DNA from: Oikopleura dioica
Lineage: Eukaryota; Animalia; Chordata
DNA: 64,000 nucleotides
NCBI GenBank assembly: GCA_907165135.1
Contig: OU015569.1
Location: 4,402,001 to 4,466,000, forward strand
Direction: 5' to 3'
Part shown: positions 9,779 through 61,300 of the stretch, in pieces
Numbering within the stretch: the stretch's first letter is position 1
Layout of the letters: every line of letters begins with the position of its first letter
Made by a program: the position numbers and the translations under genes
Notes under the pieces: generated by a model
What the model was told of the DNA's origin: nothing
Database searches by the model: none
What the model saw: the letters and a program-made list of their open reading frames with translations, nothing else

Positions 9779-10409
9779 GTTTTTATTACGTGCTACTCAA
9801 TGTTCAACGATATCACTAACGCCCGCCTGGTTAATCGAATAAACACCGGATTTTATTGTTCACGTCACTTTTGAGAAAGGCTCGCGCGGCTGAGCCAGCT
9901 AGCTCAGATTTCACTTCAGGTTGAGCAGGCTTGATCCCCTTAGCGAAAGAGCACTGTGCAACCTAATTCCTCCTTTTGAGACTCTTTAGTTCTCTAACAA
10001 GCAAATTAAATCATTGCGCAAAATTTAAGCGACGTAGTTCGCGCCAATTTTCGTGAGCTGTCTTAAAATAGCCCAAATTATCGAATGTGTTTGAAAGGAG
10101 CTCTAATCGAAAATGAGCTGACCTAAAACTGATTGAGCCTCAAAACTCTAGTCTGCTCTTCCTGAATTTAAGTTTGACAAATTCTGCTCCATAACTGCTC
10201 AAGAGCACTTAAAACTGACTTTCGTAAGAGTTCTGTCAAGTATTAATCAACTGAGGATGAAATCAAAGGAATAAGTCTCTTATTCAAAGCCCCAATAAAA
10301 ACTGATTATGCCCGGTAATCCATTTTTCATCCTAGATATTTAGATCTGCCGATTTTGTAAGGTAGCAGCGCACATTAAGGGTAAACCACGTGAAAGCTTG
10401 GCAAAATTC

Positions 10410-42200: not shown

Positions 42201-44944
42201 GAGACGATGCTAGTTTAGGGCTTTTACTTAGATTCTTTCAGAATACGGAACTATGATTTGCTCGAAGAACAGGAATTTCGGCTCAATCTGCACGATCAAT
42301 TGCGACAGTGGCTATGACTTAATCGGACCAAGGCAGCGAGCTTGTGGCGCAGAAGGCCGCTGGTCTGGTTTGCCACCAACTTGCGAATTGATCCACTGTG
42401 GACCGACGACTTCTCCTCAACACGGAAATGTTACCTGTTCCATGTTCGATCAGTTCGGCTCGCAGTGCCAGTATGAGTGTAATGAAGGAATCGGTTTATA
42501 ATGTGATGCAATACTAGTTCTTATAAGCCAAGTCTTTTGAATCGTATTTAAACTCTGTAAAGGTTACAAACTCGTTGGCTCAAATAGCCGAGTGTGCCAA
42601 GAATCAGGTGCTTGGACCGGAATTCAACCAGTATGTGAGTTGGTTCAATGTAGACCACTTGCCTCGCCCGAAAATGCGTTTGTTGCCTGTTCATCTGGAA
42701 ATGACTACAACTCACGATGCCGTTACGTTTGCACGGTCGGATTTGAGCTTGTTGGTTCGGATAACAGAGTGTGCCAAGCGAATGGACGCTGGACAGGAGA
42801 TAGACCTTATTGCGAACAGGTAACTAGTTATTGAAAGTCAGCAAAAAAATGTAAATAAATGGAGAGAATTTTATTATTTTAAGTTTCATATCGAAATAGC
42901 AAAAAAGCAAGAAATGTTTTCATAAATTCGCTTAGATGTCGTCCAACGTGGGAATGGTAATCTAATCTCGTCTTTTTTTAAGATTACATGTGGTGTGCTG
43001 TCCGATATCCCTAGAGGTCGCATAGTGTGCGCTGATGAGGATCGCTACAATTCCGAGTGCGCGTACAAATGCAATTCTGGCTTCTCGATATACGGATCTA
43101 CGACTCGTCGCTGCCTCGAAACTGGAAAATGGTCGGGCTCGGTTCCAGAGTGTCACCGAGTCAGTTGTCCAGCGCTTCTGCCTCCAGATCACGGTTCGAT
43201 GAAGTGCAACCAAGAAAGCCATCACAATTCCACTTGTTCAATTACATGCGATACTTGCTTTACTCTGGTCGGATCAACGGCTAGGCGATGTCGCGCTGAT
43301 GGTCTTTGGTCGGGAGAAGAACCACTTTGTCAGAGGTATTTTGAATCTGTAGGGCATATTTTAATACTTCAGATCTCAATGCACACCTTTGTTGAATCCG
43401 TTGAATGGAAAGAAGCATTGTTCGATGGGCGACGAGTGTGGATCAGAGTGTAGTTTTAGCTGTCTACCGGGATTCAGCATGTCTGGAAACGATACGAGAA
43501 CATGTACAGCCGACGGCGGATGGACCGGAACAACGCCGAAATGCATTCGCGAAAGTTGTATTCCGATGAACCCTGATCCGGAACTGACGATGACATGTTC
43601 TGACGACAATAAAGTCGGGTCTAATTGCACCTTTACTTGTCCTCCAGACCAGGTAACTGTCGATTCCGTTCTTAGCTTTCAATAAAAATGCAATAGAATT
43701 TGATCGGCTCCAAATGGCGAGAATGCACCTCCACAGGACAATGGACGAACACGCTTCCAGTCTGTCGTCAATGCTCCCACCTCAAATCAGACTTAGTCTT
43801 TATCATCGATGGCTCCTGGTCTGTAGGAAACGAAAACTTTAGAAAAGCGAAAGATTTCATGAAGTCCCTCGGTAATCAACAATTTCATTTCTTTATTTAA
43901 AATCGTGCTACGTTTAGTGAATCCGTTTGAAATCGGCTGGGACTACACACGAGTCGCCGTGCTTCAGTACTCGGATGATCCAAGAATCGAGTTCTATCTT
44001 AAAGACTATCAGGATAAGACGACACTTTTGAATGCAATCGATGCCATAACATACAAAGGTGCGTAGTCCGACCTGAATTATATTTAACAACACTTTATTC
44101 AAGGTGGAAACACAAGGACTGGAGAGGCTATTCGGTATATGATGGGGCACATTTTCTCTGTCGAAGCTGGCTCACGGCCGTACGTCAAAAAACATATGGT
44201 TTTACTTACTGATGGACAGTCTCAGGCAATTTTAAATATATAAAATCTTTGGTTACATAATATTAGGATGATGTGGGAGCACCAGCCCGCGCAGCAAAGA
44301 ATTTCAACATTCGAACATTCGCGATCGGAGTCGGTCAAGCAATCGAGGATGAGCTGAAGCTCGTGGCAACTCCACCATTTTCGTAAGTAGAGGAAACGTT
44401 AGCATGTCAAATGCCAGCGCATAACATGACGAGTTGACAGCTGATTTCACGAATTATGCCCTGACGAAATATCATTTAGAGACACTCTTTACCATGTCGA
44501 AGATTATGATGGAATTCGCCATTTGCAAGATACGCTTGCGTTTAAGTTCTGCGAAGATCTTGGTAAGATAAGTTGGAAAACAAAATTTACTTTTTTGTAG
44601 AGCCACAAATGAACGCAGCAATGACTGGCGGCTACGGCGGAGAATGTGTGTGCCCAGCGGGTCCCCTTGGTCCTCAAGGTCCAGAAGGACCGGCCGGCCA
44701 GCCTGTAAGTAGAGCATCTCCCGGCGCTTGGAAAACGCATTTTTAGGGCCGCCCGGGTCCGCCTGGTGTTCCTGGTTTGATGCCACCTAGTTCTCTGGAC
44801 AAGGAAGACGTCATCGAGCTTTGCCGGCAAGTTTCGACGAACGTGTTCCGTCGCTCGCGAGCTCAAAGTGCAGCAGTAGCAGCTAACAGCGGCAGCCGAC
44901 GCCAGTCATTAAACAACCGCCGTCGCCCAAATAATAGAAATTAA
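36278..44944 (+). CDS. Giant secreted mosaic protein: FN3 - VWA - 28 x Sushi/CCP - VWA - short collagen (9 Gly-X-Y) - FACIT-like tail; 5' end unresolved
   Basis: FN3 (FDKLQPDTEYKISV); two VWA domains with intact MIDAS (DLVILIDGSWS, DLVFIIDGSWS) resembling collagen XII/XIV VWA; 28 manually counted six-Cys CCP repeats (about 37285-43767); ECVCPA-GPLGPQGPEGPAGQP|GRPGPPGVPGLM; DKEDVIELCRQVSTNVF; stop at 44942-44944. Confidence 0.9.
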
Positions 44945-45566
44945 CAGAAAGATCTTCCCTTCTTAAGTTCACGAAAAACAACAACCAACCGCCAAAAGTT
45001 TCCAATATACGAATATATCGATACTAAAATAATTCAATACTTTGTATAGTTACCATTCTCATGATCCATCGACACTATCCGAGCGAAACGATTCCATTGT
45101 ATAATATCTGTGAAAAAATGAAATAAAATGCTTCTCACTTCAATTTCAAGCCTTCTATTTATGACTGGTATTGCCGTCATTATTTAATTTCGCAATGACA
45201 TGAAGTTATTTCAGTAATTTGCTTTTTTAAAAGAAAAAATACGATAAGGCCCGTTTTGGGTTGTTATCAGTCCTCAGAGAGGTGGCGGGGCTTACAGGTG
45301 ATGAGAGTGGCGAGGCGCGGCCCTTTCTCTCTTCTGGTGGTGGCGTTGCAGGAGAGAACGTGTGGTGCTCGGGAGTCAGAATTACGCGAATCACCGCAAG
45401 AACACAGAGAATCAAGAATTACTTCCGATTTTTCGACAAAAATGTTGATTCCCATCAACTCTTGATTCGATTTTTAGTGGCACAAAAGTTAGAGATAATT
45501 TTGACGAAACAAGAGAGATTAAAAAAAAAGAGAAACTGAAGAAGAAAAAGACAGGTGGAAGTATCC

Positions 45567-48500
45567 ATGAAGCTAGGCTATTTGGTGGCCTCGCTCAACC
45601 TCGTCGACGCACAGAAAAGTCCGATAGTTGGAGAATGGGGAGAATGGTCTCAGTGTGATGCGCCCTGTGGAGTCGGTGAAAGAGTAAGTTTTTTCTGTTT
45701 GAAAAGGGAGCTGGAACAAGGGTATTTTAGCGACGTGAACGAAGATGTCTTATAACGAATTTTCGGCGCTGCAATAAGCAGCCCGGTGGGTTAGTTGAAG
45801 TAGAAGACTGTAATACGGAGGAATGCACAGGGGATCCGTATTGGTCAAATTGGTCGGAAAAGAACAAGTGCTCTGAGACTTGCGGCGGTGGAACTCAGTC
45901 GCGCTTCAGATATTGCATCGGCGGTGAAGCAGGCGATGTTGGTTGCGAAGGAATCTCAGAAGAGGTCACTCCTTGCGCGACAGAGCTTTGTCCAGGCGAT
46001 TTGTGCAAGGACTCGTTTTTCGATGTGGCCATCCTTATTGAAGCGAATACCGCATCACTTTCATACAATCCCCAAATCAAGTCATTTTTGAAGAATTTAA
46101 TCGGAAGTTACAAAGCGATTTCTTCCAATGACGCTAGACTTTGCTTGATGAGGTTTTCTTCTTGGCCAGAGATCTTGAACACCTTTGACGAAATCGAAAG
46201 CTATGGGGATGCAGTGGAAATTATTGATTCAATACCTTTTTATGGAAAAGACGCCGACTTGGCGGCTGCTCTTTTTGCACTCCAAGACGAGTGTTTCGAT
46301 CTTTCAACAGGATGGCGAGGAACAGAATTAAACAACAACGGAGTCGCCAGTCAGACCATCATCATCACTTCATCGAACAGCACAATCAATCAAATTGACA
46401 CCATCAGATTGAAGAAAAAGTCACAGCGTATATTTGCAATTACTCTTGGAGATTCGAGTATAGAAAATGTCGAGCTGCTCGTTTCCGATCCTGTCGAGGA
46501 GAATTACTTCGAAGGCGCTTTTTTAGACGACGTATTGGCTGAAGCGATCGTGCAACGTCAATGCTCAAATGAGCTCTTCCCAGATCAATGTTACAGTAAT
46601 TCCGGAAGAGGGTCATGCGATGGTGAGTGTTTCACGCAGTACAATGGAGTGCGTTGCACCTGTCCCAAAGGCACGTTTTTACTCGAGGATGGAGCCACTT
46701 GTGAAGACATAGACGAGTGCGCCACGGGAACTCATGACTGTCTTGATCATCAGACTTGTTCTAATTCATTCGGCGGCTTTCGATGCGGCACAATCATGCA
46801 CGACTGCCCTGCTGGCTTTCCTTGCTCACATGGATGCGGTGGCGGGGGTGGCATTGGTGGAGCTCTCTCAATATTTGAAATGGAAATCGGTCAAAGTTCT
46901 CCCTGCACTTGTCCTTTTGGAATGGTTCTTGGACCGGACAATTTAACCTGCATGGATCAGGATTCGGTTTGAATTTTCATGCCTGCGATTTAAGGGGGTA
47001 GAAACAGCTTTTTTCGAAAAAGGCGATTTTTGAACAGCGCCCAAGCTCAGCCAACCTTAGATTTTTAAATTCTCTCTTCGATTTAAGTTAGATCTATCTT
47101 AGATCTAAAAGCATCTGTTTTTAAATTTTTTTTTTGTTTAGCCAGTTTAGCGCTATAGAGCGAAACATCAACCCATCTCGTCGAAAATCCCGATTTTCGC
47201 CAATTTTTAAACAAGATTATCTCGAGTCACATGACTAGCCGAGAATTTTCTATATCATTATAAGATAGTTTAACCCTTTTTCTAGGAGCATCTACAACGA
47301 AATTTGTGTGATCATAAAAAATGATAATGTTGAGAGTCCGATTGAAACTTCTGTCTCAAATTTTCAAAATTTTGAATTTGAAACACAATTTTTTTGTGAT
47401 ACCCTTAAGTCATCGTCCTACCTTAATTATTCACGATGATCATTTGATCCAAATGAAACAATCTAATCGGCGTTCAACCCTTTATTTAACGATTTTAGTC
47501 CTCGATAAATTTCGAAAGTCCCAAATTTGCCCCAAAACTCCAATTTTAAATGCAATTTTAAGGACTTTCTAACAAAGTAAGGGGGTAATTTTTGATAGCA
47601 TTTTTATTCTTTATGTCCTAGGCTTTCAGAATTTTAGAAAAAATCTCTCAGTTTCCATCTTTGGCAAAAGCTGTTTCTACCCCCTTAACAATAAAGCCAA
47701 ACAAGTAGATTCTAGATTCTGAATAATATTTGTTTTGAATTAACGACCAAACCCAAAAAAGATTCCGATCTTTCTCTTGGATGAGTGCAAGAATAATAAC
47801 GGAGGATGTTCTCATATTTGCCGAGATCTCGACGATGGTTTTGTATGCGAGTGTCCTGAAGAACTTGGACTATCTGACGACGGCCTAACTTGCGTATCTA
47901 TTTGCTATACGTGTGAAAACGCAGCAGACCTAACAGAGTGTCAACAGACAGAATTATGTCCTTCTTCGACGACTCCATGTGTAACGAAAATAAGCAGCGG
48001 TGAAAATGGAGCAAGCCTGATCTCGAAGGGTTGCGAGAGCACTGAACGCTGCATCAAAGATGGAAGCGACAAGCCTGTTAATTTTTGGACATCTCCGAAA
48101 TGTGAAGGTGACACGTGCGACTGTTGCTGCTATGATAGCTTCTGCAACACCGGAGCCGACTGCGCTGCTGCTAGATCACCTTTTTTAGCCTGCCCTGAAC
48201 GACCTCAATCGGATCTCGTAAGCTTATTGCAAGAAAAAAACTAGACGCACAAGTTAATGACTCTGAATGATTCAATAACTTTTTTGTATTTAAATTTTCG
48301 AGTTTATTATTTGGCACAAATTTTAGAAAGTTTTTGGAATTCCCTTTTTTTGGAGAAAGTTTTTGGAATTCCCTTTTTCGGGAAAAGTTTTTGGAATTCC
48401 CTTTCTGGACTTCTTTTTCGAAGAGGCGCTATCCCTTCTGGGACAATGTTTATTTTATCTGTCCCTGCGCTCAATCGTTCGAGAAATTTGTATTCTCGCC

Positions 48501-51500
48501 TGAAAATTTAATGAAACGTATACTTTTAATTTCAATAGATTTACCTTTAAAATCGCTTGTTTCGGACTCATCCTTCCCTACTTTTGAATTTTCGGGAATG
48601 TTGAATTTTGATAAACAAGGTCGGCATTGGGACCTGTTCTAGAGATTGGCCAAAATTTTTTGAATAACGAAATTTGTCATTCCAATTCATTTATTTCTTT
48701 CAAATTCAACCGAATAAACTGATTCAAGTTTGATGTTTCATGCACTGGAAGTTTTGTCGGAGATGTGTGCTCATATAAATGCGAAGATGGACTCTCTCCA
48801 AACACGCCTGGGCTTCTCAGCTGCTCCATTGATGAGGCCAGGGAATGACATAAATAGAATACGGCAAAATTTTTTTTTTGTTTTTATGGAATTGAATCAT
48901 GTTGACAATACAGGAAATCAAATAGTCATCTCTTCTCAGTCGACTGGTGAAGCAGTTTGGATGGGAGAAGAACCAACTGCATGTAATGATGTTAATGAAT
49001 GTCTTGTCGGAAATGGAAAGTGTCAGCAAAAATGCGTGAATAGACCAAGCGGCTTCAAATGTGAATGCTACGACGATTACGATCCGCAAAGAGACGCAAA
49101 GTACGACCTCGTATTTATTGTAGATCGCAGTGACACAACGCCCGTGGAATACCTCGACGCATACAAAGATTTCATGAGAACGATCGTGATGGATAGACCT
49201 GTTGGTAACGACTTCGTTCGCGTGGCTATTTTATCGTACGCTTCTGATGTCAAATTTGAAGCGACTTTGGAAGAAAATAACTCACTAGATGCGATCTTGA
49301 ACGTAATAGACAGCCTGGAAATCTCTGGAGTCGGTCGCAAAACTGCTAACGCAGTGGAATTTCTTCTTGATCAGGTAGACCGCCAAGGTCGTGAACATAT
49401 TCCCATGGTATCAATTTTACTGACATCTGGCGTCTCGGATGAGGATCGTCTCAAAGTTATCCTCGCTGGATGGCGAGTTCAGGCGGCCACTTGGTGTAAC
49501 GCATATTCTCTTGGCATCGGGCCATACATTAGCGAGGAGGAGATGTTCTTGCTCAGTGGGGACCTTCAGCATTACCAAATTATAAGCTCTCCTGATCTGC
49601 TAAGCGACGTTCCGAATCTTCCACCTCTAGACGAGTATCTCGATATATTCTTTCCAGGGGACTACACTCTCCTTGCTGATGGCATCTCTTGTAACATCGA
49701 TGAATGTGCCTCTGGTCTCCACGGATGCTCTTACCAATGTCAAGACTTTCCTAATGGATACAGATGCCTTTGCCCACCAGGTGCTATTCTAGGCCAGGAT
49801 GGTAAAACCTGCGACGCTGATTACTGTGTTACTGCTGGTTGCGAATATGGATGCGTTTCTCGAAGTGGAACTTTCAATTGCATTTGTCCTCAAGGAAAAC
49901 AGTTGAGTTACGACGGTAAAACGTGCGAAGACCTTGATGAATGCCGACAGTTCAACGGCGGATGCTCGCACGGCTGTCAAAATACTAATCCGAGTTACAA
50001 ATGCACCTGCCCAGAAGGGATGGTTATTTCTCAAGACATGAGGACATGCAAGGTTAATATTTGCCTGCAAAAGAACTGCGAGCAAGGTTGTTCTCCTCAG
50101 GACATGGTTTATTTCTATTCAGCCGTTAAAATCTCTAGTTAGCTCGTCATTTTGCAAATGGAGATTAATGATCGCATATCCAAATCTGCCGACTTTGATT
50201 GTCGGTTTTTGACAATATTTCTTATCTTCAGTCATTTTCGTTTGCGTTCCCGTGTTCTTCATATTCTTCATAGTCTGAGTTCCTGAAGAAAAGTATAGTC
50301 CAACAAAAACAGTGAAATTAAATTTGTATTCACCGAGAAACTTTTTAATCTTCACTCTCCGAAATCAAAACAAATCTTAATTAAAGAAAATGTTTTGAAA
50401 ATACAGTATTTTTTGTTGGACTCTACTTTGTCAACGTGTCGATTATGCTCGCGTTCAGTCGTTTTCTTCGAGGTACTGATTTCCGATATGCGCATAAATT
50501 CATCCTTGTTGCTTCGATTTCTCTTTGAACCAGCCTTCTCCAATTTTGCTTCCGAATTTTCAACAAATTTACTGTAGGATAAGAAAAGGCATCCACAAAA
50601 GATCACAATGGTAAGTGAAGTAAGAAATGATCCAAGTAAAACGTAAACATTATTTGACATAAGGTTGTGGCGGCACTGGTTCAACTTAAAAATTGTGTTT
50701 TATAATGGTCGAAATATTATTTTCATGAAGTAAATGGATCCACTCGGTCAGGCTTTGATAGAAAGCGATAAGAATTGAGCTTTCATTTCTAATTCTCAGG
50801 GATAGACTAAGCTTGATAAGATTTAGAATGCGCTCTACCTTGGTAGTTCTCATAAGTAAACCAGAAATAGGACGGTGAATGCCGTTGTTATCCAGGATAC
50901 TACTTGGCCAGCGATGGGCGAACATGCGAAAAATTCAACCGGTGCCATCTTGACAATGGAGGCTGCGAGTTCAACTGCGTTGCTGATGCCAATTTCGATT
51001 ACCATTGCGAGTGCCCTGAAGGACTGAACCTTCGGCCCGACAGAAAAACATGCGGCGTGGCCTGCTACTCGTGCAGTTGGGCCGAGTCCGAAGACGAGTG
51101 CAATCAGAACGGGCAAATCACGTGTCCTGCTGGAGATAATGCTTGTCAAGTTGAGCTTCGTCGAATAAATGGCGTGCAGTACATAAGCAAAGGATGCAAA
51201 CAGCCTGAAGCGTGTCTGTCAAATTACGCGCAAAACTGGGCAGAGAGAGGCAACGGAATCACCCAGTGCAATCAACAGGAAGATTCAACATGCCATTATT
51301 GCTGTTTCTCGCATTTGTGTAACGCAGGATTCGACTTCTCATTGGACATGTATTTCTTACCGATGTGTCCGATTAACTTTCCGTTAATCGGCTTTGAAGT
51401 ATTTGGAGGAAACGAAAACGGTGTAAAGATTGGTGGGAGCGTACGACAAGATTGCCCAGATGGAACATTTTCATCCAGCGGATCACAAGCTATGTGCAAT

Positions 51501-54500
51501 TGGGCTTTTGATCAGAGCACAACTCAAGTAAGCGCTTTCTGGTCCTCAAAGGTTTCTAACGACGGTCAATGCGAGGATGTAGACGAATGCGAAAATAACC
51601 CATGCTCTCAAAACTGCCTGAATCTTTACGGAAACTATCGGTGTTACTGCCAACGTGATCGAGAGCAGAGCTGCTCCAAGAACAATCTCGCTATTTTGTT
51701 CGTCATGCAAGGCACTTCTGACGGATTTGGATGGTTTAAGGACTTTGCAAAACAAATGATCGAGCCACTTATTTTCCCTGAGGCTCGGATCGGTGTTATT
51801 TCATATGGAGAAGAATCTATAGTAAATGTACCTCTCGAAAGCGGACAAACTACAAATTCGGTACTAAGTAAGCTTCGTGGCGCGCCTGCAATCAGGGATG
51901 GGTCAAATAAAATAAGTATCGTGAATCGATTAAGTATGATTTTTATTTTATCATATTTTCTGACCAAATATAGTGGCGCTGAAAATAATCTTGGCTCAGC
52001 AGTTGACTTTGCTGCATCTTACTTGAACGGACGAAATTTGCCCGGCTCATACACAAAAAGAATAATCATTCTTCTTGATGGAAAATCCACAGATGAAATA
52101 ATTTCTGATCGACTTAAATCCGAAGCAGACTCGATTTTTGTTATTGGAACATCAAATAGCTCAAACAAGGAGCTCCAATCGTTGACTGAAAACGTCGTCC
52201 TGATGAATGACTACATAGAACTCAGGAATGCGCTTACAAAATTCGACTTTGCTATTTTCAATGATTATTCAACGTAACATTGACAATGCTTAGGGCCGAC
52301 GCGCAAAAAATCAACCCCAAGAAAGCATCAACGGAGAGAGCTGAAACTTCGGGATATAATGTAGTTCGACCCAACTAAAAAATTGCTATTGAAAATTTTT
52401 CGGTCTGGTCACGTGGTCACGTGATACAGGCCTCCGAAAAGCTAAAAGCTTGACGACCTTGAACGCCTGATCAAGGTCGATCAGCTCATACCTCAGAAGA
52501 AAGAACTCAAAAGTTATTCTTATAGAGTAAATAAAATTTTTGGTGGCGCAATCACGTGAGGCGGTAGAAGGGAAAAAAGCTCCAAAAAACGGGTAAAAAT
52601 ATGGAAAAATCAAGCTTTCATGGGTTCATTTAGTCAAAATTGGTGTCAAAAACAGCTGTTTTGGACGTTTCAACGAGCTCTTCTGCGTCACGTGATTGCA
52701 CCACCAAAAATATTATTAGCTCTATCAGAATAACTTTTTGAGCTCTTTCTTCTGAAGTATGAGCTGATCGACCTTGATCAGGCGTTCAAGGTCGTCAAGC
52801 TTTTTTAGGTTTTGGGTCGAACTACATTATGTCCCGAAGTTTCAGCTCTCTACGTTGATGCTTTCTTGGGGTTGATTTTTTGCGCGTCGGCCCTAACAAT
52901 GCTGAATAATATAACTTTTATGTAAAAAACATCTGTGAACGCAAATAAGCTCGATCATATCAGATGAGTTACTAGAGGGCGTTTGCGATGGGTCGAGTTC
53001 ATACAAGTCCTACGGCAGCATTTGCGAAAAGGATGAGTGCGCTGAGAATAATGGTGGATGTCAACATCACTGCCACAATACTCACGGGTCGTATCACTGC
53101 TCCTGCACGAACGGGCGCGTTCTTGCCTCAGATGGCAGAAATTGTGTTGAAGACTACTGTCGAAATAATAACTGCAGCCATCAGTGCGAAAACAAGGTTG
53201 AGGGCGCGCAGTGCATTTGTCCGGAGTCGATGAAGATTGGGAATGATGGTCGAACATGTGTCGATATTGATGAATGTGAAGTTAACAACGGCGGATGTGA
53301 GTCTGTCTGCGTGAATACTGACCCATGGTATCAGTGTGCTTGCCCAGGAAACAGTTGAATTTTAACACAAATATTTCTTAATCTTTTTAGAGTAGATTAT
53401 GTTCTCACTAAATAGTAATTTTAAAAAAAACTTCTAAAAAGGTGCTCTCCTTGCTCAAGACCAACGTTCATGCGTTCCTGATCCATGCGAAGGTGTGACC
53501 TGCAACGTTCCGGACCAAATTTGCTACGGAAACCATGATGGCACATACCAATGTCGCTGCGCTGATGGATACCGACATAATGCGTTCCTCGGAATCTGTG
53601 AAGACATAGACGAATGCCTTTACGGAAACTATTGCCAATACGGTTGTGAGAACCTGGAAGGTGGCTACCGATGTACGTGTCCTGAAGGCAAAGTCCTTCG
53701 CGATGATGGACGAACCTGTGGAATCGTTTGTTACAGTTCAGGGTTCGAATATAGTTGTTAAGAGCACTATCATAGAGCAATTAACGAAAAAACTTTGAAT
53801 AAAACTGCTCAGTGTCAAATTAAGAACTCAACTAAAGTTGCATAAACGCAGCGACAAACGAAGAGTGCAACCGTCACAGTGAAGTGTGCACGCCTGAGGC
53901 AGATTCTTGTCAAAATGAAATTCGCATTCATTCTGGCGTTAAACGAATCACGAAGCGTTGCAAGCAAGGGCTTGCCTGTCAGAACAATTACCGCCAAAAT
54001 CCGCCAAGCTATCTTCTGGACTACTACACTCAGCCGCAGAATCAACATCAATGCAATGGCGGAACTGCTAATAACGTATGCCGATGCTGTTGCCAAGGAA
54101 ATCACTGTAATTGGGCAGAAAAACCATGTACAGGAAGATACGACTGTGGCGCGGTAAGTGAACTCTTGATTATCCAAATATTGCTTCCTAAAACATTCGC
54201 AGCCAAAGTACTCATTAAATATTTCTGAATACATTACAGTAATTAAGGTTTTTCGTCACTCTTCTTATTACAACAAAATAGCATATCGTCATCAGTAAAA
54301 ATTGTTCAATACAGCTCATAAATTTCTTCTTCTGGGGCGGTAGGGTCTTCTGGATCTTCTGTATCCTCGTCCTTCAGTTCTTGAAGATAGTCAAACTTTG
54401 GGTAGTAAATGTACTTCTGTCCATAAAACTCCATTTCGACGTAATCAAAGTCCAGAAATGCTTCAAATGGCGTATCGGTTTCGTATTCGTACAGATCGAA

Positions 54501-57500
54501 TTGAGCTATCAAAACTAATAATACTAAAAAATCATAAAGGACTTACTGTTATCTTGAGCACATTCATCACAAGAGCTGATAGCAAAAAATGCAAAGAGTT
54601 GCAGAGCAAAAAGCTTCATTTTTTAATGACTTGACAGTGATATTTTTATTTATCGCTGGAAAGGATCTAGAATCTAGAAAAGTTTCATTTCAAATACGGC
54701 GTTTGATTTCAATTAAAATTCTGCTGCGAAAAAAAGATGCTAGACACGTCAAAGAACTTGTCATCAGTACTTTAATCAGTACCTGCCGATCGACCAATCC
54801 TTTTGGATAGAGATGCCTAATCGTTTTGGATAGAGACACTTAAATTAATGTCGAAAATGTGACGTTCATCAAAAATTTAGGCGGACTTCGACGAACTGGT
54901 TTTCCTCGTTGATGGATCTAAAAACATAAAACTTCATGCTTTTAACGAAATTGCTGCTAGTATCGCATCCATTAGCGAGCATTTTGAAGATTCGTCCGTG
55001 GAGATTTCGACAGTGCTATTCAGCGCAAATGGAACAAATTTGGTTGAAAAACTAACTGAAGATGTTTTTAACGGAGATCTGAACGGATCGACTCAGATGT
55101 CTGTTGACTTTATCAATAGCGATCTTACCAGGTTTGCAAAAATCTCCTTCTCTATTATCACAAATAAATTCAGTAATGCGAAAATAGTCTTGATAACGAA
55201 TTCTCCCGGAGAAGTTATCATTCCAGACGGCTTTTCCGCTCGTGAAATTTATGTAGTCGGCGTCGGCAACGTTGAGCATGACACGCTTAGCTTGATTGCC
55301 AGTGGCAACGTTGATAACGTTTACCGACTGGGCACAGCTTCCGAACTCGACCAGATCGTCAATGATTTGGAATCAAAAGTGTGTCGCGCTCCCGATTTCT
55401 GCGAGCTCGCGGAGTGCTCACATACGTGTTACAGTGATGCAGAGCGAGCCTACTGCACATGCCCGGATGAACTAATTCTGGACACAGATTTCAAGACTTG
55501 CGTCTCGTCAACAATGTCGATCGGAGCTAACTTGTGTTCGATCAACAACGGCGGATGTCAGCACAGGTTGGAGTCGGCATACAAGACGATTTTTAGAAAA
55601 ATTAAGGTGCATTTTTGACGGACCCGGTCACCATTGTGAATGCGAGCCCGGCTATCGACTGGATGATAATTATAGAGGTTGTCATGATGTCAACGAGTGC
55701 ATGATCAATAATGGGGACTGCTCTGATCGGTGTATTAACACTCCAGGAGCACATCAATGTATTTGCTCTAATTGGGCAGAAGAAAAACTGTCAGGCACTG
55801 GTTACTCGAAAGTTTTACGAATATATTTTTAGTAAAAATTTGCACAAAACTTTTTTGATAGACCATCGATTCAATTAATTATTTAGTATTAAATGCTTAC
55901 GAAGAGAGCATTTTTGCGATAAAAGTCAATAATTAAGAGAGTAACCTTAAACTTTGATGACGGACGAACCTGTGTCCCCATTTGCGACCGAGGGTTTTCG
56001 TATTATGGGCATGCTTGTTGGAGAATTCAGGGAACATTCGACTTTTTCGACGCGAGGGAGTCATGCAGCTCTGTGGGTGCGCATTTGGCCATTCTCAAGG
56101 ATCAAAATCACCTTCGAGCTGTCGTCGATCATATCAAGGTATCGTTACTGGAAAGACATCAAATAACCCAATTTCATTCAGTCTTGGGAGGAAGAAAATG
56201 AAAGTCTTGTCGGTGCCAAATACTGGGTCGGTCTATTCCGAAGTTCTGATCGCATTCCATTTATTCCGCCAGGTAAGTCAAGCGCAGTATTGGACTCATG
56301 AAAGAATAATCGATTATCTATCATCTTCTATGATTTTCCATGAATACTATCATTAGTCCAATTAGCCAAGGACTCTAATCTAATGCCTCGCGTTTAGGTA
56401 ACTGGACTTGGATTACTGGGTTGAACGACGAAAGCTTCCAAAATTTGCAGTTAGATTTGGACGACGCTCTGAACAATACAGATGGAGATTGGGCAAACGC
56501 AGTTTTCCAGAATTTTATCTGGGGTAGCGAAGATCCCATCAAAGTTCAGCGTGAGTATCTGTTGTTAAATTCCCAAATTTGTCAATAATTAGCACAAAAG
56601 AAGGCAAATGAGGACAGACGTCCAGAATTAGATTTGAGACTTCTTTAATCTTGGATGGCGTTTACCGTTCTCCGCTGATCAATTATGCGCTCTTTGTTAA
56701 ATTCGACAATATTTTTATTCGACTATCTATAATTACTTCATTTAACTTTCAGTCGACTGTATGGAGCATATTAAACACACAAAAGCGTACCGACCAACTT
56801 ACACCGCAGAGGACAATGTCTTGGCAGCTAGTATTGATCAAGTTTACGACAAGTTTGGCGGCAGGCGAAACTACATTGATGATCGTTATCCGTCACGCTC
56901 AAGGTATCACAACTGGCTATATTTCGCCGTTAATGCGTAAACTAAACTAACCTAGATGTTTGTTCTCTGACGACTTTTCAACGAAAATTTAGACGTGATT
57001 TAACATATGGTAATCCATGTGGAGCTCCACGAACTGCTTGCGGCTCGGCCTATTCCTACAATGGAAAGGCAACTCTCTCAGGTTTGTTGATCATAAGCAT
57101 TGATCTAAATTAACCCTAATTAAAACATAGTTTCCTTTATATACACCCTTCATTTTTAATGAACATAAGAGCTTGCAATTTATGCACCTCCTTTTGATCT
57201 GATGAAACTGAACACTCAGCTCTTACTTTTAATATTTAAACTGTTCTACTTTGGTGCGTCACGAAACTTATGTATCTTATCAGAATCAGATTAAAACTGT
57301 CCAGTTGTGACTCCTTCTATCAATGAACTTTAGCCGAGCCTTGCTGGAAGCCACTGAACTACATCTGCCAAAAGACTCTTTCTGAGTCCTTCCTTCAGTA
57401 CCAAAATGTCTGGGACAGCGGCGCAATCGTCAATCTTTACATGAGCAGCGACAGCAATCAAGTCACGCTCACCTTCCCTGTCCCAGTTAAACTTGTAAGT

Positions 57501-57958
57501 TGAAACAATGAATTTATCATCACCATTTACACTAAAAAAGGTGTCATAAATTCATGAATCAAAAGAAAGGGTGCTATAAAACGGAATAAGTTTGTTAACC
57601 GCTACTTGAATATTGAGTTGATTGGGCAGACGTATCCTCTTCTAAATAACTTTTGGATTAATTAAGAATGTATGGCATGGTTTTTCATCTGAATCTAATT
57701 TCGCCACGACACATGTATTAACACAGCGAGTTAATGGCAATCACTACGAGAAGCATTCCGGTAAAGGCATATTGTCGTTTGCGATGGAGCTGGTCACTGA
57801 CAGGAAATGGGGCAAAAGAAATATGATATTGACAATGTCCTTAGAATTAGGGAAAAGAAGAAAAAATATTCCGTCTTTTTTATAATTTATAAATGTTATC
57901 AGTCTTCATTTGCCCCGTTCCAAGTATCCTGAACTTGGCTGACATCCTTATCAATTAA
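45567..57958 (+). CDS. Giant secreted mosaic ECM protein: TSP1x2, 4 VWA, many (cb)EGF, 3 Ly6/uPAR-like, 2 CCP, C-type lectin, C-terminal CBM2-like module
   Basis: Signal MKLGYLVASLNLVDA; TSP1 (GEWGEWSQCDAPCG; WSNWSEKNKCSETCGGG); VWA at about 46010, 49110, 51690 and 54890; DIDEC/DVNEC EGF repeats; LU-type CYxC...CCxxxxCN domains; CTLD (CWRIQG..DARESC..YWVGL..CWKPLNYIC); terminal QNVWDSGAIVNL..VTLTFPVPVKL|NVWHG. Most junctions checked splice in frame; the last exon is uncertain. Confidence 0.88.
46994..47684. mobile_element. Non-autonomous DNA transposon with TTAA target site (Kolobok-like)
   Basis: Perfect 19-bp TIR GGGGGTAGAAACAGCTTTT; TTAA on both sides (46990-46993, 47685-47688). Purine-purine 5' termini fit Kolobok rather than piggyBac (CCY). 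Confidence 0.8.
48327..48404. repeat. Intronic minisatellite, about 3 copies of a 28-29 bp unit
   Basis: AAAGTTTTTGGAATTCCCTTT repeats begin at 48327, 48356 and 48384. Confidence 0.85.
50119..50660 (-). CDS. Putative nested antisense gene, small single-pass membrane protein
   Basis: MSNNVYVLLGSFLTSLTIVIFCGCLFLSY (TM) followed by a charged tail and a second ORF ending NG* at 50119. It lies wholly in host intron 50107-50870, whose flanks rebuild the EGF CSPQDM|DGECRC. Internal splice sites not resolved. Confidence 0.5.
52291..52895. mobile_element. Non-autonomous hAT DNA transposon (foldback-like MITE)
   Basis: TAGGG termini; 84-bp TIR with 2 mismatches plus a second inner inverted block of about 125 bp; exact 8-bp TSD ACAATGCT at 52283-52290 and 52896-52903. 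Confidence 0.92.
54306..54619 (-). CDS. Nested antisense secreted acidic, Tyr/Phe-rich peptide (about 90 aa, 2 exons)
   Basis: MKLFALQLFAFFAISSCDECAQDN|TQFDLYEYETDTPFEAFLDFDYVEMEFYGQKYIYYPKFDYLQELKDEDTEDPEDPTAPEEEIYELY*; 41-nt GT-AG intron 54506-54546 in correct phase; inside host intron 54155-54880. Confidence 0.75.
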
Positions 57959-58310
57959 TCGTCTCCGAAAGCAACGAACGACCCTTGAAAGCTCGAAAAC
58001 AGAAACACTCTTCCCTCTTTATTGAATAACTTTATTTTGTAATTAATACGACAATTCGCAATAAACGTCAAAAATTGATTTTTGATAGAATACAAATCGG
58101 AGTCGATAAAAAAACAAGCGTAGCATATTTATTAGGGCTGAGCGAAAAAGGAAGAAACAGGGCGCGCGCACCATCTAGTGATATAGAGCACAAAATTAGA
58201 ATAGATAACAGACGGAATAACAGTAAGCTGCATCCGAAAACTATTTCAACACTAATTATATGAACTACCCAATCACTATGAACTATTAGAGAAAAACATT
58301 AAAAAGAGAA

Positions 58311-61300
58311 ATGTCCTGCGGAAGAGATAATTGTACAGGTAGAGCTGCGAAGAAACTAAAATAGGTTTATTTTTTTTTTATTATAAAATTAGCAAAAAAG
58401 TTCTATAAGAAAATAATATAATTATATTCGATATGAATTTGATTGTATAATTTATTTCGACTAGTTTCGGACTGTACTCGCTATATTATATATCGTAAGA
58501 TTATCGGATTTCTAGCAAATTTAAGCCAACAAAATCGAAATTCGAGTTCCAACATTAATATTGTACTTGCTGAAGTTCGGCAGCTGAGCCAAACGGTCGC
58601 TGATCACCTTCCTCCTTAATGATTGATATTATTCATACATCTTGACTATTATTCATAGCCTGTAAATCGGAAATGAACGTGCAAAAAATTTTGCGCAGCT
58701 CTAAGCATCGAACAAATTCGGAATCTTTCTGGTTGTTCTGTATATTGTTTACTTGTCTATTGGGGCAGCAGTTTTCCAGGTAAGAGAATGTTCGATCAAC
58801 CAAAAAAAAAAACGAAATTTCCCGAAATTTGAAAAACTGGACAATCGTCTAGTTTATTTTTTGTTGTTTATCAAATGTTTATGATTTTTACAAAAGGCAC
58901 TGGAGACGCCGAAAGAGCTGCAAAAATGCGACGCTGCGAGAAAAAGTGTGCTTGACAAAGTCGACATGTTAGGAAATGAGTTTGGAGCTCAATTACGTCT
59001 TATGGCAGCAGAAAGAGGAGCTATCGAAGTGAATTTTGTGCGTTTTGCACTGCCTCTAGAAATGTCTTGACGAATTCGGGCGTGTATCCTCCGGCAACGA
59101 AATCAAAGAAGAATCTTCTATACACTTTCTTTAATAGATCAAGTGGAATTTCGACGAATCCCTTGGCTTCGTGGTCGAACCATTCAGAACCGTCTGGGTC
59201 AGGTCCGCCGTAGCGAGGAGACAGCTCTAGAATCCCGGTTAGGTTCTGTTTCTCCAGGACCCAGGGCCATTCTTCCTCAGAACGATATCCCTGGATTATG
59301 TACGCAAAATCGATCGCACACTAAAAATTTTTGTACATTTTCATTTGTGTAAGATTAACTTACAAAGTGACAGTTTCCATCTTGAGATCTCCAATGTGCA
59401 TTCATTTTCGCGTCGTCTAATTGGCTTACGACTAGTCGGAGAAATTTTTCCAATGAAACTTTAAATTTCGATGGAGCTGCAGGCCCCTTTTCTTTTTCAG
59501 CTTTCTTGGCATAGCTGTCGTAAATCTTGTAAGAAGTATTCCTTGCCGGATCTTCTGGATAGATTTGCATCTTGTCCCTCCATCCTAAATTGACATGCTA
59601 AAAAAGATTACGAATAGTATGGTAAGACTAACCTGATCTTGCTCGAGTAAAGGGGTCTCTCGTGTTTACATATTTGTTGTATTTGGCTTCCAACAGTGCT
59701 GCATGGTCGACTGTATGGAATCTTGGAACCGTTGCGTACAAAGCAGCGGGAAAGTAGTTGTTCTTCTCCGACTCATCCACGACTATTCCTTTAGCGGCCA
59801 TTTCTTCTTTTGTTATAAACAGCTTCGCAAGAGCGATTTGCCAGTTTGAAGTCCCAGATTTTGGCGGAAGACACATCAGGAAATTTTTTTGAACTTTTGG
59901 CGAGTCTTCGTGACGCAAAGCAAACACGTTGTTGTTCCATTTTATTCCAGTGATAGAATCAAACCGCTTCCAAGAGTAAGGATCTTTGAGTTCGTCGCCA
60001 GGCTGAATCGACATATTTTCTATTCGCCTGTGAAACTCTAGTAGGTCTTCAAATGAAATGCTTGAATTTCGCGACATCGCATAAAGACGCTCTCGATATG
60101 AACATGCAAGTCGTTTGACATTGTAACGACGGAGCAATCTCTCTTCGACCTTTTTTGAAGCATCCATTCGACTGACATTCGTTTCTGAGCTCGAGGGATC
60201 GGAAACATCTTGAACTGCTTCAATGATCCATTGAGTTGATTCTTGCGAAGGGCAAGACAAGTTTATGTTCAGACTCAAAATCTTAAAAAACCCTTCAATG
60301 AGTAAATAATTAATCAACTCACGGTGAGAACTCCAATGAATAAAAGTGCGTTTCTTATCTTCGCCGTCTCTGAGTTAGAATTTCGTGTGACTTCGTTCCT
60401 AACCATTCTGGTTTACTTTTGCTTTGAATGAGAGGAAATGAAGACTCTTCTTTGGTCTTTATAAAAGCGTGTAAAAGGTGTATTTGGGCGTTCTTTTAAA
60501 AACGACTGAATCGAAAAAGCCGTCGGATTATTCAGAATGGGCTTTGGCGAGTCGCAGCACCATGATCAATAAATGATTTCTTCTTCCCGACAATTTTTTT
60601 TTTCTCTACAATGGGTTCTACAATCAAAGGACGTGAATAGAGCATAAAAGTTTTTTTTCTTGAGGTATTATGTTGGTTCTACAGTGAAGAACCTACACAA
60701 AACATTTTTGTAATTTGTGAACTTTGGTTGAATCGTTTCTCAAGTTAAAAAAACTCTCGTAAATTTTTAAAATTAAACCGGGGTGCTGAACTTTGCACGA
60801 GTTTCCAGGACAATCTTTTTGCGGGTGCGCGTCAGTTAAGGCGTTTTTGCCATTTGCGTCTTTTAAGGCATTGCGTCTTTTAAGGCACTTGCGTCAGTTA
60901 AGGCGCTGAAAAATGACTAGTGGAATTCTGATATCAACTAGGGTCTGCTAGATTTCTTGATAAAATATTACTTTACCAATTCCTAGGGTAAGTGCCAGAG
61001 TTAATATTTTCTCAAGAAAATCTTTTTATATTCAGTTATTAGCTGAACCGCTGGTTTATGATTGAATTTGAAGTTTTTCGTGATAGAATAAATTTATTAT
61101 TTGTAAAAATAAAGGTTCGACACTAAAATTTTAGATAATTTTCTCAGATCGTTTTCAATGTATTTGAAATATCTGAAATTTAAATATTTTGAATACGCTG
61201 TTAAATTTGAGATTGAAATGGGGAGAATTTCAAGGATAGTTACAATCGAGGTAATTTAGCAGACCCTAGTTGATATCAGAATTCCAATAGTCATTTTTCA

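Follow-up and report, generated by a model that had tools for sequence, protein, structure and literature searches.

Tunicates are, to our knowledge, the only animals that make cellulose. In the searchable literature, house and tunic proteins associate with the cellulose scaffold, but no endogenous cellulose-binding domain is named in a tunicate structural protein. The oikosins associate variably with cellulose, as described by Sagane et al. (PMC3071929); Hosp et al. speculated that oikosins might touch this scaffold through their lectin domains (PMC3390340); and ascidian cellulose has been stained with a bacterial CBM3-green fluorescent protein (GFP) probe (PMC10986139; doi 10.1101/2024.09.30.615758). 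Here, we describe the C-terminal tail of a large matrix-type protein from the larvacean Oikopleura dioica, encoded within a stretch of 64,000 nucleotides (nt) (GCA_907165135.1, contig OU015569.1, positions 4,402,001 to 4,466,000 of the forward strand), hereafter the window. We hold the chances to be evenly balanced that this tail is a very divergent module of the type of carbohydrate-binding module family 2 (CBM2) and a putative binder of crystalline beta-glycan, with cellulose as the most likely ligand.

Three described systems invite comparison. The tail resembles the bacterial and archaeal CBM2 modules (CAZy CBM2/PF00553) in its length of about 95 to 100 amino acids, its predicted beta-sandwich, a superposition that covers the full domain, a colinear series of motifs (Y..W..G..N, T-L-x-F, W, G..G, F, then a Pro ahead of the final strand), two invariant Trp residues that align with binding-face positions, and a terminal place in a modular secreted protein. 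Unlike these modules, it goes undetected by Pfam, has 12 to 22% identity to them in structural alignments, carries V/I/A in place of the core Trp, lacks the Cys pair, has an uncertain third aromatic, possesses a highly conserved loop of its own (QRV-x-GN-x-Y-x-KH-x-G), and belongs to a nonenzymatic metazoan matrix protein in which a spliceosomal intron splits it. The CBM2 modules of animal GH9 cellulases, such as A0A6J8C3L9, are likewise eukaryotic, secreted and presumed to recognize cellulose, which makes them a plausible source for domain capture; they adjoin a catalytic GH9 domain, whereas the tail adjoins VWA, EGF and C-type lectin domains (CTLDs) and is unrecognizable at the sequence level. 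Finally, the G3 region of lecticans (EGF-CTLD-CCP) and the CTLD-bearing oikosins (PMC3390340) also combine EGF repeats with a C-terminal CTLD in a large secreted matrix protein, but none of these CTLD ends has been described as terminating in a CBM2-like sandwich. A text search of the supplements to the oikosin paper (PMC3390340) returned neither a tail motif nor a matching peptide.

A gene of many exons on the plus strand encodes the tail at its 3′ end (Table 1). The tail comprises about 105 amino acids, contains no Cys and forms the C-terminal end of the protein. When the five exons ahead of exon f were rebuilt from their splice sites and translated together with the start of exon f, the spliced product of the 55.9- to 57.4-kb exons matched Pfam Lectin_C (PF00059) with an E value of 5.6e-7 and 30.7 bits, above the gathering cutoff of 22.6. 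Exon f (57334 to 57494), which starts in phase 1, supplies the final strand of the CTLD, CWKPLNYICQK; the tail runs from about position 57375. The first-pass annotation of this DNA had placed two exons with a phase-0 junction directly behind a C-type lectin, and the letters do read that way. Its boundaries need adjustment at both ends: the coding exon begins 62 nt ahead of the proposed start at 57396, and the proposed end at 57958 lies 73 nt past the actual stop. Its description of the protein as giant was roughly right, since the exon tally, with a start near 45567, gives a rough estimate of 2,400 to 2,500 amino acids.

We next consider the distribution and conservation of the tail. When the 114-amino-acid tail was searched with phmmer against 1.84 billion representative proteins, the only matches were four short proteins, each an orthologous exon fragment; they correspond to exon-sized open reading frames (ORFs) from Tara Oceans assemblies of plankton metagenomes or from a Logan contig of run SRR3989320. 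A homologue search with exon 2 alone gave no match, and a search with the exon 2 alignment gave five fragments, again all orthologues. Profile searching and a metagenome scan added P0005 to P0007 and L090, the last being the one locus found by the scan and identical to the L001 lineage. Counting all of these, five or more further lineages carry the same tail (loci L001/L090, L002, L006 and L007 and protein P0007), with an amino acid identity to the window tail of 48 to 62% for orthologues aligned over the tail length. On the orthologue contigs no coding piece follows the tail until an unrelated convergent gene, and wherever the DNA could be read (L001/L090, L002, L006, L007) a phase-0 intron follows PVKL at the same site, measuring 47 to 50 nt there and 172 nt in the window. 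The order VWA-EGF...VWA-EGF-CTLD-tail also recurs on the orthologous contigs L002, L003 and L007.

Nonsynonymous differences between the lineages amount to 0.11 to 0.25 per site, while synonymous differences, at 0.76 to 0.93, are saturated, which indicates that the tail is under strong purifying selection. In the first half of the tail, the columns that are invariant across five lineages are F8, Q10, Y11, Q12, W15 (57411 to 57413), G18, N22, Y24, L34, F36, P37 and P39. The second half contains W45 (57673 to 57675) and the best-conserved block, QRV-x-GN-x-Y-x-KH-x-G-x-G-x-L-x-F, with Y69 at 57745 to 57747. A 369-amino-acid entry in the AlphaFold DB is 88% identical over tail residues 3 to 88 and continuous across the exon junction, so that an existing protein model joins the two exons in the same way.

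RNA runs deposited under the same species label (X4, X5) contributed 18 reads over 5.4 kb (53000 to 58400), and a single-cell run had no reads on this locus. All 18 reads are 90 to 95% alike to the window, and they differ from it consistently (at 56190, 56211 and 56214, among other positions), which suggests that two deeply diverged lineages share a species name, one represented by the assembly and the other by the RNA. Reads of the diverged lineage end at the 56180/56182 acceptor, with exon a-like sequence upstream of the acceptor. None of them falls on exon g (57667 to 57885) and no joints were reported, although 18 reads are too few to judge the last junction. The missing coverage would fit a tail that is a mis-spliced or decaying 3′ end and not a functional domain. 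The window copy also has an odd 6-amino-acid insert and a basic C-terminal extension, both missing from the orthologues. Such decay appears very improbable to us, given the intact frame, the canonical splice sites, an intron that keeps its phase and position in at least five further lineages, nonsynonymous change far under synonymous change, and a 369-amino-acid protein model that crosses the junction.

The ends of the tail vary among its copies. Within 57790 to 57885, the insert of the window copy, LVTDRK, precedes the conserved WG..N, and the extension, GKRRKNIPSFL, replaces the short hydrophobic last strand of all the orthologues. The alignment of the 369-amino-acid protein stops at tail residue 88, and the C terminus thus varies even between close lineages. 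In the Tara orthologue L002, an extra intron (9888 to 9982), found at no such site in the window gene, splits the first exon of the tail; its frame closes only with a GA start, not with GT (...AACTCAG/GAACTATT...GGAATAG/GTGCC, slashes marking the joints), making it a noncanonical GA-AG intron. The 48-nt intron of the same locus (10055 to 10102) is in frame and free of stops, and P0001 and P0005 are ORFs that read through it, which accounts for 93-amino-acid read-through "proteins" made by prokaryote-style gene callers in public collections and the ESM Atlas.

To predict the fold, we used AlphaFold2 without templates, on alignments made of larvacean sequences only and of exact pieces only. Model 1, covering the full 114-amino-acid tail, reached a predicted local distance difference test (pLDDT) score of 63. 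CBM2 was over-represented among its Foldseek matches, with 9 of the top 50 in the PDB and 8 of the top 30 in Swiss-Prot, the latter aligned exactly on the CBM2 module, and the model also matched the N-terminal module (residues 18 to 123) of the 899-amino-acid "Endoglucanase" A0A6J8C3L9 (TM score, 0.56; 21% identity). For model 2 (m1430f35e4fce), built on an alignment of 11 rows, the lineage-specific ends were trimmed and the C-terminal alignment was improved; the pLDDT rose to 70.0, the predicted TM score (pTM) was 0.63, and the five models were concordant. Its first 13 Foldseek matches in the PDB were all CBM2 (2cwr, 1e5b, 3ndy_E, 5dhd, 5dhe, 6bt9, 6qfs, 2czn, 1exg and 1xbd), with TM scores of up to 0.62/0.70 (1e5b), E values of 4.5e-3 to 3.4e-2 and, for 3ndy_E, 22% identity. 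In VIA-align, the 12 best superpositions of model 2 were on CBM2 or chitinase-borne binding modules (Z, 8.3 to 7.0; root mean square deviation, 2.5 to 3.6 Å; 81 to 91 residues), and the first unrelated fold followed at a Z of 6.7. An exhaustive comparison with 48,161 representative chains, independent of Foldseek, likewise placed CBM2 or chitinase binding modules in the top eight positions (Z, 8.3 to 6.7). The closest described modules are the CBM2a of C. fimi Cex (1EXG/6QFS), the CBM2b of Xyn10A (1E5B/1XBD/2XBD), that of C. cellulovorans EngD (3NDY), the chitin-binding domains of the P. furiosus and T. kodakarensis chitinases (2CWR, 5DHD/5DHE) and that of ScLPMO10C (6F7E). We give weight to the fold assignment because, despite modest scores, the matches converged on one family as the model improved.

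For comparison at the sequence level, we assembled 80 actinobacterial CBM2a modules from genome contigs; a second, more diverse set of ten came from plasmid records of Clostridium, Bacillus, Brevibacillus, Butyrivibrio, Arthrobacter, Streptomyces and four proteobacteria. Every comparison was run on these real sequences. All CBM2 sequences in the comparison were bacterial, and the likeness to an animal CBM2 comes from the Foldseek match of model 1 to A0A6J8C3L9. Against a broad CBM2 profile of 26 sequences, which included Clostridium, Bacillus and proteobacterial modules, hhalign produced a score of 18.9 (P = 0.011) and a colinear alignment over 92 columns; this score was reached by 3 of 400 column shuffles, and the reversed alignment scored 14.5, so that the profile-profile signal is modest. 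Tail residues Y11, W15, G18, N22, the T-L pair, W45 and F80, together with the Pro ahead of the final strand, pair with conserved CBM2 positions. No lineage departs from W15 or W45, and in the alignment these two residues fall on the first two binding-face Trp residues of CBM2a. In Cex, the surface aromatic strip of CBM2 is formed by W17, W54 and W72.

Several results weigh against reading the tail as a CBM2-type module. With hmmscan against Pfam-A up to an E value of 10, no family was assigned to the window tail or to any of 10 orthologue pieces. The phmmer search of 1.84 billion proteins contained no CBM2 among its matches, nor did a profile search of the PDB sequences, and an ESM Atlas feature search with P0001 gave scores of at most 0.84, which is noise. 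When only the 80 actinobacterial CBM2a modules were used, the hhalign result was nonsignificant (P = 0.13), and hmmsearch with its filters off (--max) gave 3.8 bits, a value reached by 2.5 to 5% of shuffled tails. The core Trp of CBM2 (G-W-x-L/W-T-L) is invariant in all fetched CBM2 modules (26 of the 26 aligned, and also A5), while the tail has V/I/A in that column (QVTLTF, KITLIF, AAQLTF). No lineage has a Cys in its tail, so the disulfide between the N- and C-terminal strands of CBM2 is absent; this bond is not universal, as several genuine CBM2 modules (L093, L097 to L099) also lack the Cys pair. The third aromatic, in the GN-[FHN]-Y loop, shifts in the alignment from run to run and has a model pLDDT below 50. 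On the structural side, the alignment behind model 2 is shallow, with about six or seven lineages, the best Foldseek E value is only 4.5e-3, and a Z of about 8 falls within the range that the tool itself calls a common arrangement. Model 1, since superseded by the trimmed model, was ambiguous, as many sandwich folds fitted it at equal Z and its geometry gave no clear family.

The lack of conventional significance in any sequence method, the missing core Trp and disulfide, and the equal fit of model 1 to many unrelated sandwiches would also suit a larvacean-specific beta-sandwich that resembles CBM2 through convergence or model bias and serves protein-protein assembly, for example by oligomerization or by docking of the neighboring CTLD, with no carbohydrate binding. 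CBM2 has no motif that corresponds to the block QRV-x-GN-x-Y-x-KH-x-G, and small C-terminal sandwiches of extracellular matrix proteins often serve assembly. We nevertheless think such a sandwich unlikely, because with the better model Foldseek and the geometry-only exhaustive search both settle on one family, and because the profile alignment is colinear, with both invariant Trp residues on the binding-face Trp of CBM2, at a P of about 0.01.

A CBM2-type fold for the tail is likely, judging by the predicted structure, and we infer, with somewhat less assurance, that the tail shares common ancestry with CBM2, a descent that appears fairly probable. The CBM2-like module proposed by the first-pass annotation, which had named AlphaFold and Foldseek as a check, survives in part: a beta-sandwich of CBM2 type was predicted, with CBM2 modules as its best PDB matches and a colinear profile alignment, while Pfam CBM_2 is blind to the tail and the core Trp and disulfide are not there. 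On present evidence, we describe the tail as working like CBM2 and do not claim formal membership in the family, because the Pfam model does not recognize it and the core Trp is replaced.

One further match arose in the profile search of PDB sequences. C-reactive protein appeared at a nonsignificant E value of about 1 through a stretch resembling MWD-x-VLS, and it was set aside; a pentraxin, moreover, is twice as long as the tail. The segment KLDVWHGVLSSEDEF...RVHGNFY (tail residues 41 to 71; 57489 to 57494 plus 57667 to 57753) aligned in this case with NLQMWDYVLSS...RVKGNVF of the zebrafish-type C-reactive protein 4pbo/4pbp. This weak likeness, though nonsignificant, is curious for a protein of the sushi/VWA/EGF kind.

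The structural neighbors of the tail bind cellulose, xylan or chitin and so do not decide its ligand; we take cellulose to be the most likely one because the animal makes it. The tail could instead have a CBM2-type fold and bind chitin or another glycan and, together with the adjacent CTLD, fix the protein to a matrix that is chitinous or glycosylated in some other way. Chitin-binding modules (2cwr, 5dhd/5dhe, 6bt9, 2rtt) and xylan-binding modules (1e5b/1xbd/2xbd) are as numerous among the nearest neighbors as cellulose-binding ones, the third aromatic position is variable (H/F/N), and a 2026 preprint reports expression of chitin synthase genes in oikoplastic cells (doi 10.64898/2026.03.31.715263), which makes chitin a live alternative. 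We rate this alternative as quite unlikely: the documented scaffold of the house and of the larval fin is cellulose (PMC3071929, PMC3390340), and the two invariant Trp residues and the invariant Tyr fit a planar type A face, a binder of both polymers, with nothing that favors chitin specifically.

If the tail is a CBM2-type module with cellulose as its ligand, a flat face that bears W15 and W45, along with both aromatics of the GN-[FHN]-Y loop, would lie against the surface of crystalline beta-1,4-glycan. Other matrix proteins may be bound by the VWA and EGF domains, and the secreted TSP1/VWA/EGF/CTLD protein would in this way couple a protein network to microfibrils. The place of the module beside a CTLD and behind VWA/EGF arrays suits such an adaptor between polysaccharide and protein networks. 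We further infer a binding face, a ligand and a possible role in the house or tail fin from these likenesses. More tentatively, and with some doubt on our part, larvaceans may have captured a CBM2 module, most plausibly from an expanded GH9 cellulase gene, into a nonenzymatic TSP1/VWA/EGF/C-type lectin matrix protein, as an adaptor bolting a protein network onto the self-made cellulose microfibrils of the house or of the larval fin, after which the module would have diverged beyond detection by sequence models.

As a putative binding module, the tail offers a testable hypothesis for the attachment of protein to self-made cellulose in an animal, and W15, W45 and Y69 offer a concrete, mutable handle on protein-cellulose coupling in an animal matrix. 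If the proposal is true, a carbohydrate-binding module has moved from enzymes into a structural protein, and an animal-made adaptor joins a protein network to self-synthesized cellulose. The case also suggests that fast-evolving larvacean domains can escape Pfam yet be recovered through structure prediction.

Table 1. Features of the tail-bearing gene, in window coordinates
Feature	Position (nt)	Strand	Basis or remark
Probable start codon and short signal-like peptide, MKLGYLVASLNLVDA	45567-45611	+	Putative, read by eye; directly before TSP1 repeat
Earlier exons of this gene: TSP1, at least 4 VWA, many EGF/cEGF/FXa-type EGF, Ly6/uPAR-like Cys-rich units	45731-55829	+	Pfam on large exon ORFs
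C-type lectin domain with long loop insertion, six exons	55938-57374	+	Pfam Lectin_C; splice sites read
CTLD exons (approximate)	55938-56138, 56182-56272, 56398-56550, 56753-56903, 56993-57081, 57334-57374		
Tail module, first half	57375-57494	+	Linker TLSES, then strands
Phase-0 intron inside module	57495-57666	+	172 nt; GTAAGT donor, AG acceptor
Tail module, second half (exon g)	57667-57885	+	TAA stop at 57883-57885
AATAAA, possible polyadenylation signal	58060-58065	+	About 175 nt past stop; read from DNA, no RNA support

At the 5′ end of the gene, the open stretch 45540 to 45752 holds the putative start, and the next exon has a Pfam TSP_1 match. A collagen-like gene lies upstream, with its stop apparently at 44941 (region 44747 to 44941), and the putative new ATG follows at 45567; the upstream sushi/collagen chimera and the VWA/EGF/CTLD protein are probably two separate genes. 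A possible second copy of the tail on the minus strand at 31.7 to 31.9 kb was rejected: its tblastn E value of 0.008 came from a tiny database, and the stretch is not coding-like. Among the upstream exons, the Cys-rich exon at 53836 to 54225 (CINAATNEECN...CCCQGNHCN) resembles the Ly6/uPAR-like unit at 47744 to 48241; the latter has a weak Pfam Toxin_TOLIP match (E value, 7.8e-4), and the former has no Pfam match. Downstream of the tail, a convergent ORF of 229 amino acids on the minus strand (59628 to 60317) contains the motif PPKSGTSNW; its match to Pfam Sulfotransfer_2 is weak and under threshold (E value, 0.069), and the ORF is possibly a carbohydrate sulfotransferase exon.

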